DNA of 64,000 nucleotides, from positions 19,158,001 to 19,222,000 of the forward strand of contig NC_087451.1 in NCBI RefSeq assembly GCF_036321535.1, written 5' to 3'. Below the pieces are notes generated by a model. That model did not search any database. It saw nothing but the letters and a program-made list of their open reading frames with translations, and had not been told where the DNA came from. Origin of the DNA: Camelus dromedarius. Taxonomy: Eukaryota. How positions within the stretch are numbered: the stretch's first letter is position 1; each line of letters begins with the position of its first letter. The translations under genes and the position numbers were made by a program. This document shows, one piece after another, positions 6,298 through 36,842 of the stretch.

Positions 6298-6510
6298 NNN
6301 NNNNNNNNNNNNNNNNNNNNNNNNNNNNNNNNNNNNNNNNNNNNNNNNNNNNNNNNNNNNNNNNNNNNNNNNNNNNNNNNNNNNNNNNNNNNNNNNNNNN
6401 NNNNNNNNNNNNNNNNNNNNNNNNNNNNNNNNNNNNNNNNNNNNNNNNNNNNNNNNNNNNNNNNNNNNNNNNNNNNNNNNNNNNNNNNNNNNNNNNNNNN
6501 NNNNNNNNNN
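6298..6510. other. Assembly gap (213 N) in the FXR2 3'UTR
   Basis: N run seen directly. Confidence 0.99.
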
Positions 6511-13773: not shown

Positions 13774-13937
13774 NNNNNNNNNNNNNNNNNNNNNNNNNNN
13801 NNNNNNNNNNNNNNNNNNNNNNNNNNNNNNNNNNNNNNNNNNNNNNNNNNNNNNNNNNNNNNNNNNNNNNNNNNNNNNNNNNNNNNNNNNNNNNNNNNNN
13901 NNNNNNNNNNNNNNNNNNNNNNNNNNNNNNNNNNNNN
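13774..13937 (-). other. FXR2: Assembly gap (164 N) inferred to contain FXR2 exon 2 (53 nt)
   Basis: Exon 2 (GFVKDVHEDSVTIFFEN) is found nowhere else between exon 3 and the promoter. On the minus strand a pyrimidine tract (tcactttct) runs into the gap. Confidence 0.8.
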
Positions 13938-19305: not shown

Positions 19306-19741
19306 NNNNNNNNNNNNNNNNNNNNNNNNNNNNNNNNNNNNNNNNNNNNNNNNNNNNNNNNNNNNNNNNNNNNNNNNNNNNNNNNNNNNNNNNNNNNNNN
19401 NNNNNNNNNNNNNNNNNNNNNNNNNNNNNNNNNNNNNNNNNNNNNNNNNNNNNCGGGNNNNNNNNNNNNNNNNNNNNNNNNNNNNNNNNNNNNNNNNNNN
19501 NNNNNNNNNNNNNNNNNNNNNNNNNNNNNNNNNNNNNNNNNNNNNNNNNNNNNNNNNNNNNNNNNNNNNNNNNNNNNNNNNNNNNNNNNNNNNNNNNNNN
19601 NNNNNNNNNNNNNNNNNNNNNNNNNNNNNNNNNNNNNNNNNNNNNNNNNNNNNNNNNNNNNNNNNNNNNNNNNNNNNNNNNNNNNNNNNNNNNNNNNNNN
19701 NNNNNNNNNNNNNNNNNNNNNNNNNNNNNNNNNNNNNNNNN
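19306..19741 (-). other. FXR2: Assembly gap (436 nt, N except a 4-nt cggg island at 19454-19457) inferred to contain the FXR2 5'UTR and coding exon 1
   Basis: The minus-strand flank GCAGTAGGCGGTGGCGGCAG resembles the start of the FXR2 mRNA; GC-rich sequence on both sides. Confidence 0.85.
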
Positions 19742-27410: not shown

Positions 27411-27631
27411 CTCGCGGAGGATGCTACTTGGGGAGCCCAGCAGGACTGTTCCTGTTGGTAGATCTCTTGATTGTCATCAAGGCAGCCTCCGCAGGTGGGC
27501 AGAAGGCTTGGAAGACACAGGTCAGGCTCTAGAGGAAGGGAAGAGGGAAGTCCTCTCCCAGCTCATAACTTTCTCAGCAGTGGGGGAGGGTAGTGGAGGA
27601 ACTCTGTCCCTTTCTCCATTTGTCCTCAGAG

Positions 27632-27700
27632 GGGCCAAAGGGTCAGTGGCCCTGTCTCCTGCCTTCCTTCTTACCCCTGAGGCAACCTTTAACCCTCCAC
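27632..27700 (+). promoter_or_regulatory. SHBG proximal promoter nuclear-receptor elements (HNF4A/COUP-TF-type FP3 and FP1 homologues)
   Basis: GGGCCAAAGGGTCA 27632-27645; CAACCTTTAACCC 27683-27695 (reverse GGGTTA-A-AGGTTG, a DR1) in the TATA-less position recalled from human SHBG. Confidence 0.65.
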
Positions 27701-27777
27701 CAACCATGTGTGAGGCTGCCTGCCCCCATGCTTTCTCCCCAGAGCTGTCTGAGGCACAGAGAGGACCAAGGCTGATA

Positions 27778-30617
27778 ATGGAGAGCAGAGGTCCACTGGC
27801 CACATGGCATGGGCTGCTGCTGCTGCTGCCGCTGATGCCTCCTAGCCACGCAGGAAGGGCCCTGAGACACACTGTCCCCAGCCAGGTGCAGGGGCAGGAC
27901 AGGGTGCTCAGCCCCATCTGTGTTTAAATGAGCTACTCTTTGGCTCTGCCCTGTTCCTTTCTTTCCTCCCCTGGCCTTGTAGCAGTGCCTCTCCTTCCCT
28001 CCCTCTGTCTCCGGCATGTCCTTATTTCAGCTTGTTTGTTTTCTATCTCTGACAGAGGACTCAGGACCCTCCTGCTCTACACCTCAGCAATGGCCCAGGA
28101 CAAGAGCCTGTCACCATAATGACCTTCAACCTCACCAAGATCACAAAGTATGGGGTTGACCTAATTCCTTGACCTAGTCCCCTGACCTCACCCTCTCTCC
28201 ATCATCTCCTTTCTTTTCCATTTCTCCCTGCCCTTCTCTCTCCCTGAAGTCCACCTCCCTCAACCTCACATCTACCATCAAAGGGCACACCCCATACCCA
28301 GTCCTTCTGTGTCCTTCCAGAACCTCCTCTTCCTATGAGTTTCGCACCTGGGATCCAGAGGGAGTGATTTTTTATGGTGATACCAACCCAAAGGATGACT
28401 GGTTTGTGCTGGGACTTTGGGATGGCAGGCCTGAGGTCCAGCTTCACAATCACTGGGCCCAGCTTACAGTGGTCACCGGACCCTGGCTGGATGATGGGAG
28501 GTGGCACCAGGTAAGCCAGATCTAGTCCTGAGAGAGGGGTGTCTTGAGCTGGTCTGCGGAAGGGAACAGAACCAAGTTACTGGGTATCCTTTTACCATTG
28601 TCATCTCATTGAATCCACATAAAAGCCCCAAGGAGCTGCTATTCTTGTCCCCATTTTTTTCAAAGAGGAATTCTGAGGCTTAGTATGTAAGTGACAAGTC
28701 CCAAGTGAGCTAGTGATGTTAGCTGACTCGTCAAGTACGTGTTCTTTCTGCCATACAAAGCTGCCTCTGAAGAAAGTGGTGAAGGCAGGCCTCAGGGGTC
28801 CTGGTTCTGCTTCTCTTTTCCTTCCTGCAGTTAGAAGTGAAGATCCATGGAGACTCTGTGCTGCTGGGGTGGATGGGGAGGAGGTGCTGCCTGCGTCTGA
28901 GACAGGTCTCTGGGCCTCTGGCCAACAAACCCCAGCCCATCATGAGGATTGCGGTGGGGAGGCTGTTGTTCCCTGCCTCCAACCTCTGGTTACCGGTAAC
29001 TGCATCACAGGGGTAACCAAAGCTGGTAAAGCTCTGCTGGCAGGGTGGCCATGGGGGTCTAAGTCCACACTTCACGGAGAGGGGATGGGGTGAGTGCTGC
29101 ATGGGGGGAGGCCAAATACTTGTGTCTTGGAGGGGAATAAGCTGAGGGTGGAGAGGCTGGGACTAGGGCTCAGATGTCCTGATTCCAGCATCCCCACATC
29201 TTCCCTTTCCCCCATGGGCTCCAACTGGTCCCTGCCCTGGATGGCTGCCTGCGCCAGCATGACTGGCTGGACCAACAGGCCCAGAGCTCAGCATCTGTCC
29301 CCACTGGCCTCAGAAGCTGCTCCGTAGAGTCCCAACCTGGGATATTCTTCCCTCCAGGGACTGGTGCAGAACGCAGTCTTCAAGGTAAAGGCCATCTTTC
29401 TCTCCATGACCAGCTTGTGTCCATTTCCCTCCACCACTAGCCTCTTCCGTCCACAAATACCCAACCTTGAGACCTCAGGAAGATCATTTCTCCCCCACCC
29501 CCAGACATTCCCCAGCCTCATGTAGAGCCCTGGGCCTTCTCCCTGGACCTGGGACTCCAGCTAGCAGCAGGCTCAGGCCCTCTCCTTGCCATTGGGACCC
29601 CAGAAAACCCTACTCGGCTCAGCCTTCACCTCCAAGATCAAGTAAGAGAGGGATGCTTCCTGTATATGCTGGAGCCTGGAAGCAATGGGAGAAAAGGGGA
29701 CTCCAAGAAGTCAGTACTAGGAAAGCTTAAGGGTAGGGGTTGGGGGATGGGGGGCCTGCAGAGACACATGTTGAAGCTGCCTACACCAAGCAAATGGCTT
29801 TTACTTAAGATTGTATATTTACTTGGGACTTGGGGTGGGTGTGGTTTTATAGAAGGCCAAGCCAGGAGAATGGAGGCAGGATCGAGGTGGTGGGAATGGC
29901 CAGTAATTAGACTGTGTGGCTAAGAGGCAGAATTGAGGCAGCCAGAGTGGGACCACAAGGTTCACTCTTTCCTTCCCAACTTGTGTCCCTTCCAATATAC
30001 TCTGCATAAGGTGGTACTGTCTTCTGGGTCGGGGCCAGGGCTGGACCTGCCCCTGGTCTTGGGACTCCCTCTTCAGCTGAATCTGACTGTGTCCAGGGTG
30101 GTTTTGAGCCAGGGGCCAAAGAAGGAGATGCTTACTCTGCCTCCTGTGGGTCCTGGCTCCCTCTTCAACCTTTGGGCCCAGCTGCAGGGGCATCTCTTCC
30201 TGGGGGCTTTGCCAGGTAAGAAAGTGATGTCCACGTTTCTCAGCACACCACTGGAAACAGCTAAGGGGAGGGGAGAAGATGGGAAGGGGTGCATTTTTAG
30301 GGGAAGGAAACCTCTGGGAGGGAAGAGGAAAAGGCTACAAGAAGAGAGAGGGTAAGCGGGCAGTGGGAGGAAATGCGTTCAAAAATTTAGGTTGGAGAAC
30401 TGGAAAAGCAGGGAGGAGCTTCTGGATCCAAGCCACCCTAATGTCCCCTCAATGCTACCTCCCTCTAGGAGAGGCCTCTTCTGCCTCCTTTTGCTTGGAT
30501 GGCCTTTGGGCACAAGGCCAGAGGCTGGACATGGACCGGGCCTTGAGCAGAAACCAGGACATCTGGACTCACAGCTGTCCTCAGAGCCCAAGCAATGGCA
30601 CTGACACCACCTATTAA
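27778..30617 (+). CDS. SHBG: Sex hormone-binding globulin, 8 exons, with lesions (possible incipient pseudogene or remodelled protein)
   Basis: Exons 27778-27885, 28056-28147, 28321-28510, 28831-28995, 29225-29384, 29505-29641, 30008-30215, 30469-30617(TAA). Laminin-G motifs [21 protein letters not shown] and HSCPQSP are present. Acceptors of exons 5 and 7 are non-AG, and exon 4 has a compensated frameshift. Confidence 0.93.
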
Positions 30618-36702: not shown

Positions 36703-36842
36703 NNNNNNNNNNNNNNNNNNNNNNNNNNNNNNNNNNNNNNNNNNNNNNNNNNNNNNNNNNNNNNNNNNNNNNNNNNNNNNNNNNNNNNNNNNNNNNNNNN
36801 NNNNNNNNNNNNNNNNNNNNNNNNNNNNNNNNNNNNNNNNNN
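36703..36842 (+). other. ATP1B2: Assembly gap (140 N) inferred to contain the ATP1B2 start codon and coding exon 1 (112 nt)
   Basis: Left flank is the GC-rich end of the 5'UTR. Gap size fits 112 nt plus margins, and MVIQKEKKSCGQ is absent elsewhere. Confidence 0.85.

Follow-up and report, generated by a model that had tools for sequence, protein, structure and literature searches.

Does the sex hormone-binding globulin (SHBG) gene of camels still give rise to a normal steroid carrier in the plasma? The question is raised by a stretch of 64,000 nucleotides from the dromedary genome (Camelus dromedarius, assembly GCF_036321535.1, contig NC_087451.1, positions 19,158,001 to 19,222,000), referred to here as the window, in which SHBG is encoded at 27778-30617 on the forward strand. 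The original prediction, made from the letters of the window, described this gene as decaying or remodelled with every lesion keeping the frame open. In the current analysis the structural changes of SHBG are found to be real, fixed and family-wide, and no younger than the camel family itself. We tentatively favour, at somewhat less than even weight, the reading that normal production of the canonical secreted, calcium-stabilised and steroid-binding protein may have ceased, with the gene possibly in an early and slow functional erosion.

Identity of the gene and authenticity of the changes

The eight exons of the gene join into a spliced reading of 1206 nt that encodes 401 residues and a stop codon, with zero internal stops and zero ambiguous bases (N). 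Its translation is identical to the NCBI entry for sex hormone-binding globulin isoform X1 of Camelus dromedarius (P0164, XP_010994818.1), referred to as X1 below, and the product name given by NCBI to the dromedary gene is plain SHBG without a quality flag. Both the laminin-G families of Pfam, PF00054 and PF02210, have been assigned to this protein, its top matches are all named SHBG, and exon 3 alone matches human SHBG in the PDB with an E-value of 3e-36. The camel protein shares an identity of 75-84% with other laurasiatherian SHBGs. An acetyltransferase gene is situated upstream, on the opposite strand, at the camelid, oryx, dolphin and fox SHBG loci. The camelid gene is a single-copy ortholog of SHBG.

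The camelid loci compared are those of the dromedary (the window), Camelus ferus (wild Bactrian camel), C. bactrianus (domestic Bactrian camel) and Vicugna pacos (alpaca), and the outgroup loci are those of minke whale, Delphinus, Oryx, Rhinolophus and Vulpes. A pair of indels (-1 and +4) in exon 4, AA at the acceptor of exon 5, AT at the acceptor of exon 7 and the substitutions G145R and R154W form a set that is common to all four camelids and is seen in none of the five outgroups, R154W taken singly being also present, by convergence, in Delphinus. As the lesions are in all the camelids and the outgroups are without them, they date from the stem of Camelidae and precede the separation of the camels from the llamas and alpacas.

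The -1 lies in a run of G and the +4 repeats a short stretch in tandem. Such contexts are prone to error, and these two lesions could be suspected of being artefacts of assembly or sequencing. Against this, 303 words of 31 nucleotides (31-mers) were sampled across the SHBG gene and counted in sequencing runs, and 100% of them are present in at least 14 DNA runs from at least eight studies under one species label, and a further run, with a second species label, contains all of them too. The independently built assemblies of the four species are also identical at the shared lesion sites. The artefact explanation is excluded for practical purposes. Canonical bases in reads or in other camelid genomes had been named in the original prediction as the sign of assembly errors; the DNA runs contain the words of the window, and the three further camelid assemblies carry the lesions.

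No paper on camelid SHBG or its lesions was found in the literature searched, and the family-wide remodelling is, as had been supposed, undescribed in that literature. The claim that the lesions are specific to this gene is upheld. The accompanying claim of clean neighbouring genes stands for SAT2, which adjoins SHBG and is represented by complete acetyltransferase models at the loci of the other three camelids, the check being limited to that gene.

The compensated frameshift of exon 4

The compensated frameshift is seen at the DNA level as predicted. Nine codons at 28867-28893 are rewritten to G-W-M-G-R-R-C-C-L, such that the EVDGEEVL of the human PDB chains is replaced in the camel by GWMGRRCC plus one extra residue. 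The -1 alone leads to a stop nine codons on, and the +4 sits just before that stop. Based on the indel rate of camelid introns and flanks, the chance of a compensating indel in the 27-nt target over the whole of the stem is estimated to be ~0.03 or less. Random compensation being so improbable, SHBG was probably under selection when the +4 arose. This is the only frame-keeping feature of the gene that is statistically telling.

The rewritten stretch is a β-hairpin of the first laminin-G domain (LG1), comprising residues 115-122, in which D117 is lost, the local charge is reversed and two adjacent cysteines are gained. When 62 other mammalian SHBGs are aligned with it, V116 and D117 prove near-invariant; the rewrite swaps them to W and M. 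Table 1 of PMC8804615 assigns D50, E52 and A160 to the calcium site, H101 and D117 to a zinc site near the dimer interface and C164-C188 to the disulfide of LG1. Calcium is suspected to be essential for the dimerisation of SHBG and for steroid binding (PMC5064763). In the AlphaFold model of the whale protein this stretch is a strand-turn-strand hairpin with a predicted local distance difference test score (pLDDT) of ~80. When AlphaFold2 was used with the same 47-sequence alignment for X1 and for minke whale, the mean pLDDT was 38 for the camel (31-38 over five models) and 65.5 for the whale (44-65.5). This gap was rejected as evidence, the alignments being shallow and the camel model being poor even in the unlesioned second domain.

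The splice acceptors of exons 5 and 7

The introns of camelid SHBG, seven in number, depart from the GT-AG pattern at two acceptors in four of the four camelids, that of exon 5 being AA and that of exon 7 having moved by 3 nt. The loss of the exon-5 acceptor, a change of AG to AA, is thus confirmed and is camelid-wide. Skipping of exon 5 leads to a premature stop at residue 192. Counted from the ancestral start of exon 5, the four nearest AGs lie at -36, +33, +54 and +60. The model X1 needs splicing at AA, and the annotated routes are only AA itself or the +54 site, use of which is implied by NCBI models X2 of the dromedary (P0263) and X1 of the alpaca (P0234). Use of the +54 site deletes the first 54 nt of the exon, equal to 18 residues, including the calcium ligand A160 and Cys164; the same two residues are lost with the acceptors at +33 and +60. 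Splicing at -36 would bring in 12 further residues and leave A160 and C164 in place, the AG of this site being situated upstream of the pyrimidine tract.

At exon 7 the change of AG to AT is real, and its interpretation as damage is not borne out. The acceptor AG has moved by 3 nt with the loss of one Lys in all four camelids; as the ancestral motif was a tandem acceptor, this shift would be harmless. The fact that all the cryptic acceptors are in frame was considered as a sign of selection and rejected, since the AGs at +33, +54 and +60 belong to in-frame CAG (Gln) codons and the rescue of exon 7 is due to the ancestral tandem acceptor. The open frame emphasised in the original prediction is therefore meaningful only in part, namely for the frameshift compensation and not for the acceptors of exons 5 and 7.

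Exon 1 and the signal peptide

A further lesion, new in this analysis, is observed in the alpaca. Exon 1 of its gene (locus L001) has in the single assembly a deletion of 32 nt; the Leu core of the signal peptide is lost with it, and a stop follows after 11 codons. Because this deletion breaks the frame, the NCBI models of the alpaca start at the internal Met of exon 2, from which the frame is open up to the stop codon in all four camelids. The predicted open frame holds in the coding sequence of Camelus; the alpaca carries an uncompensated frameshift in exon 1. Considering the usual marks of a pseudogene, a premature stop or uncompensated frameshift is absent in the window and in the two other species of Camelus and is present only in alpaca exon 1, and the loss of an essential splice site is seen in the AG to AA change of exon 5.

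The signal peptide with only five consecutive Leu, listed earlier among the lesions, is unremarkable beside those of oryx and dolphin and has been rejected as such. The hydrophobic core of the Camelus signal peptide looks similar to the oryx core in a sequence comparison.

Substitutions in the protein

Comparison of the camel protein with the human PDB chains reveals GLRDG changed to GLWDG, GPRLD to GPWLD, NLRLP to NLWLP and LGGLL to VGRLL. These correspond to the three predicted Arg-to-Trp changes (R72, R94 and R154), all by a change of CGG to TGG, and to G145R, and all four are present at the DNA level. As one group of camelid lesions the Arg-to-Trp set has to be divided: R154W is family-wide, and R72W and R94W are confined to Camelus, the alpaca keeping CGG at both codons, which was not visible from the window alone. 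Unique changes at columns with at least 95% conservation number eight in the camel, the median being 3 and the rank of the camel 6 of 63; two of the eight are contributed by the frameshift.

In Delphinus delphis SHBG (locus L006, exons 4 and 8) the frame is shifted by 1 nt close to the 3' end, so that the final residues differ and the protein is lengthened to 409 residues. In addition to R154W (KLWLR) it has other unusual changes, among them GLRAQ and IPWPH. A loosening of SHBG may have occurred in more than one cetartiodactyl lineage. No full-length SHBG of Sus scrofa is found among the 120 matches listed in either homolog search. The sole pig entry listed (P0288, an 'Uncharacterized protein' of 182 residues in UniRef) is a fragment running from intron 4 into exons 5-6.

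Selection on camelid SHBG

A GY94-F3x4 branch model was fitted to 400 codons of nine taxa; in the camelids the codons of the frameshift and the Lys of exon 7 were masked. The ratio of nonsynonymous to synonymous rates (omega) is 0.48 in the background. On the camelid stem it is 0.50, with a profile confidence interval of ~0.28-0.90, and a value of 1 is rejected. The crown has an omega of 0.56 (interval ~0.27-1.19), which does not differ significantly from 1 (p=0.13) or from the background (p=0.69). Over all the camelid branches omega is 0.52, with p=0.006 against 1 and p=0.74 against the background. Neither a measurable relaxation nor a sign of positive selection is seen for camelid SHBG. The original prediction had offered either relaxed selection or selection for an altered protein, and neither half is demonstrated, the camelid omega being equal to that of the background and below 1. 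The branch dN/dS comparison proposed along with it has thus been made and detects no relaxation, the test being a weak one: SHBG evolves fast everywhere (omega ~0.5), and the crown test therefore has little power.

The divergence of exons is close to that of introns between dromedary and alpaca (1.96% vs 2.08%). This was rejected as a sign of neutrality, since minke and dolphin, taken as a control, show an equal ratio (4.4% vs 4.3%).

Functional erosion or a rebuilt protein

The erosion of canonical SHBG, towards which we lean slightly over a rebuilt working protein, would proceed as follows. The frameshift would have been compensated early, while SHBG was still under selection. The dead exon-5 acceptor would be passed by way of the annotated bypass, at the cost of A160 and of the Cys164 of the C164-C188 disulfide. 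Transcripts of SHBG would persist, and the alpaca would further have lost the frame and the hydrophobic core of its signal-peptide exon. As SHBG is weakly constrained in all the mammals tested, an erosion since the late stem would be compatible with a normal omega and an open frame and would leave both looking normal. In support of this reading, the invariant R72, F206 and F44 and the near-invariant V116 and D117 have all changed, and the omega of the crown is not significantly below 1. The family-wide dead acceptor of exon 5, the alpaca deletion and the eight unique changes at conserved columns also speak for it. SHBG is entirely absent in birds (bioRxiv 10.1101/2020.07.02.184432), and its loss can thus be tolerated. 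A number of observations weigh against erosion. An omega of 1 is rejected both on the stem and over all the camelid branches, and the value for all the branches does not differ from the background. By parsimony, 16 of the crown changes are nonsynonymous and 13 synonymous, counts that the background constraint fits ~2.9 times better than neutrality. The three Camelus species have zero stops and zero net frameshifts, the rough chance of which under neutrality since the crown split is ~0.35-0.4. Compensation within 27 nt implies selection on the downstream frame at that time. The X1 reading keeps the steroid contacts S42, D65, F67 and N82, M139, the calcium-site residues D50 and E52 and the cysteines C164, C188, C333 and C361, in agreement with the original prediction. 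The promoter is conserved over nine species. RNA runs labelled reproductive system contain a fraction of 0.17-0.32 of the words, near the ~0.34 that is expected for spliced exons only. The deletion in alpaca exon 1 rests on one assembly.

Many of the same observations speak for the alternative of a rebuilt SHBG that still works under purifying selection, which we consider a serious possibility though short of probable. Such a protein would bind steroid and would have gained cysteines and, on its dimer side, a hairpin of altered charge; exon 5 would be joined through the -36 or a downstream acceptor, the shift at exon 7 would be neutral and the alpaca would have lost the secreted form secondarily. 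The omega values, the compensation placed exactly before the induced stop, the open frame of the three Camelus species, the retention of all the contact, calcium and cysteine residues, the conserved promoter and the roughly exonic share of words in the RNA runs are all consistent with it, and so is a load of unique changes that is ordinary apart from the frameshift. What such a protein has to overcome is an AA acceptor throughout the family, the replacements for which are candidates only. The annotated bypass drops the calcium ligand and the disulfide cysteine, and the AG at -36 is upstream of the pyrimidine tract. The hairpin rewrite also hits the near-invariant V116 and D117, the alpaca has its exon-1 frameshift, and the crown omega is not significantly below 1. 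Retention of only a non-secreted product, for example a germ-cell form from the internal Met of exon 2, with plasma SHBG lost, would account for the start of the alpaca models at that Met, for the frame that is open from there in four camelids and for the reproductive-system label of the RNA runs in which the gene is seen. An isoform from an internal Met has been described among human testis SHBG transcripts. We know of no function established for this form in any species, and the problem of the exon-5 acceptor affects it too; this explanation is regarded as improbable. Erosion of canonical plasma SHBG remains the reading slightly favoured.

Features of the locus

The features of the SHBG locus are collected in Table 1. 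The direct-repeat element GGCAACCTTTAACCC of the conserved promoter is, by comparison with the human promoter, a putative HNF4 site. The window contains 949 N in all, in runs at 6298-6510, 13774-13937, 19306-19453, 19458-19741 and 36703-36842, none of which is inside SHBG.

Table 1. Features of SHBG in the dromedary window (positions are those of the window)
Feature	Position	Strand	Remarks
Proximal promoter and 5' region	27520-27777	+	conserved in nine species; contains the direct-repeat element GGCAACCTTTAACCC, likewise conserved
Exon 1	27778-27885	+	start codon and signal peptide; intact in the dromedary window
Exon 2	28056-28147	+	holds the internal Met (mature Met30), start of the NCBI alpaca models
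Exon 3	28321-28510	+	core of LG1, with steroid and calcium contacts
F44Y	28334-28336	+	exon 3; Y in camelids; F44 invariant in 62 other mammals
R72W	28418-28420	+	exon 3; Camelus only; R72 invariant in 62 other mammals
R94W	28484-28486	+	exon 3; Camelus only; R in 48 of 62 other mammals
Exon 4	28831-28995	+	carries the compensated frameshift, G145R and R154W
Compensated frameshift	28866-28894	+	-1 (G5 to G4 at 28866-28869) and +4 (CTGC tandem copy, 28887-28894)
G145R (AGG)	28960-28962	+	exon 4; all camelids; G in 55 of 60 other mammals
R154W (TGG)	28987-28989	+	exon 4; all camelids; R in 53 of 62 other mammals
Candidate replacement acceptors of exon 5	29187-29284	+	all in frame; AG at 29187-88 (-36), 29256-57 (+33), 29277-78 (+54) and 29283-84 (+60)
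Exon-5 acceptor, dead	29223-29224	+	AA in four of four camelids, AG in five of five outgroups
Exon 5	29225-29384	+	extent as in NCBI model X1
F206R	29372-29374	+	exon 5; R in camelids; F206 invariant in 62 other mammals
Exon 6	29505-29641	+	
Exon-7 acceptor	30006-30010	+	ancestral tandem acceptor CAG/AAG, cut after CAG, now CATAAG, cut after AAG; AT at 30006-30007, next AG at 30009-30010
Exon 7	30011-30215	+	
Exon 8 and stop codon	30469-30617	+	

An in-frame ATG is found at 27706-27708, 24 codons 5' of the SHBG start, and is used by the 425-residue models of C. bactrianus (P0266) and oryx (P0163). NCBI also predicts an isoform of 286 residues in the dromedary, the wild Bactrian camel and the alpaca (P0267, P0268 and P0269; window ~28466-28880). 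It has an out-of-frame start in exon 3 and a splice from within exon 3 to the rewritten segment of exon 4, reading SLQW before the junction and CCLRLRQ after it. This isoform may be supported by RNA or may be a workaround of the frameshift by the predictor. No camelid proteins derived from Logan (assembled transcripts) were found with residues 120-290 of the camel protein as query.

Comparison with known systems and significance

Mammalian SHBG or androgen-binding protein (human 1D2S, 1KDK, 1LHN and 6PYA), in its canonical form a secreted homodimer with nanomolar affinity for DHT and testosterone, has in common with the camelid gene its locus by SAT2, its eight coding exons and its two laminin-G domains, and the camelid gene encodes all the steroid-contact, calcium-site and disulfide residues. 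It is unlike the mammalian form in the rewritten 115-122 hairpin, the missing AG of exon 5, the lost first Lys of exon 7 and in R72W, F206R and G145R, and the alpaca is without a usable signal-peptide exon. Birds are an example of a vertebrate lineage that manages without SHBG; they have no gene at all, whereas the camelids keep an open, conserved-looking and probably transcribed one. Compensated frameshifts in intact genes, as met with in gene-loss pipelines, similarly consist of nearby indels, here -1 and +4, that sum to a multiple of three with a short rewrite, but the camelid case lies in a structured β-hairpin of a ligand-binding domain and is accompanied by the loss of a splice site. The ancestral CAGAAG of exon 7 is of the NAGNAG type of tandem acceptor, in which loss of the first AG moves splicing by 3 nt and leaves one residue fewer; unlike other NAGNAG acceptors, the camelid shift is, as predicted from sequence, fixed and not an alternative use of both sites.

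To our knowledge, SHBG is made by all mammals. We give an even chance to the proposition that Camelidae would be the first placental family known without canonical plasma SHBG. The gene would then be either a slowly eroding relic or the source of a rebuilt protein. On its dimer side such a protein would have a hairpin of reversed charge with added cysteines, its LG1 would be shortened at the C-terminus, and its steroid binding or oligomer state would be unlike that of all other mammals. An exception or rebuild throughout the family would offer a natural experiment on three features of SHBG, namely its dimer interface, its calcium site and its C164-C188 disulfide. Camelid SHBG is also a useful test case for gene-loss pipelines, since it evolves fast and its omega does not tell early loss and function apart. 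There would be consequences for the reproductive endocrinology of camelids, including the calculation of free testosterone and free estradiol and seasonal breeding. If it is true, the 'free' sex-steroid levels of camels, llamas and alpacas would need another interpretation.

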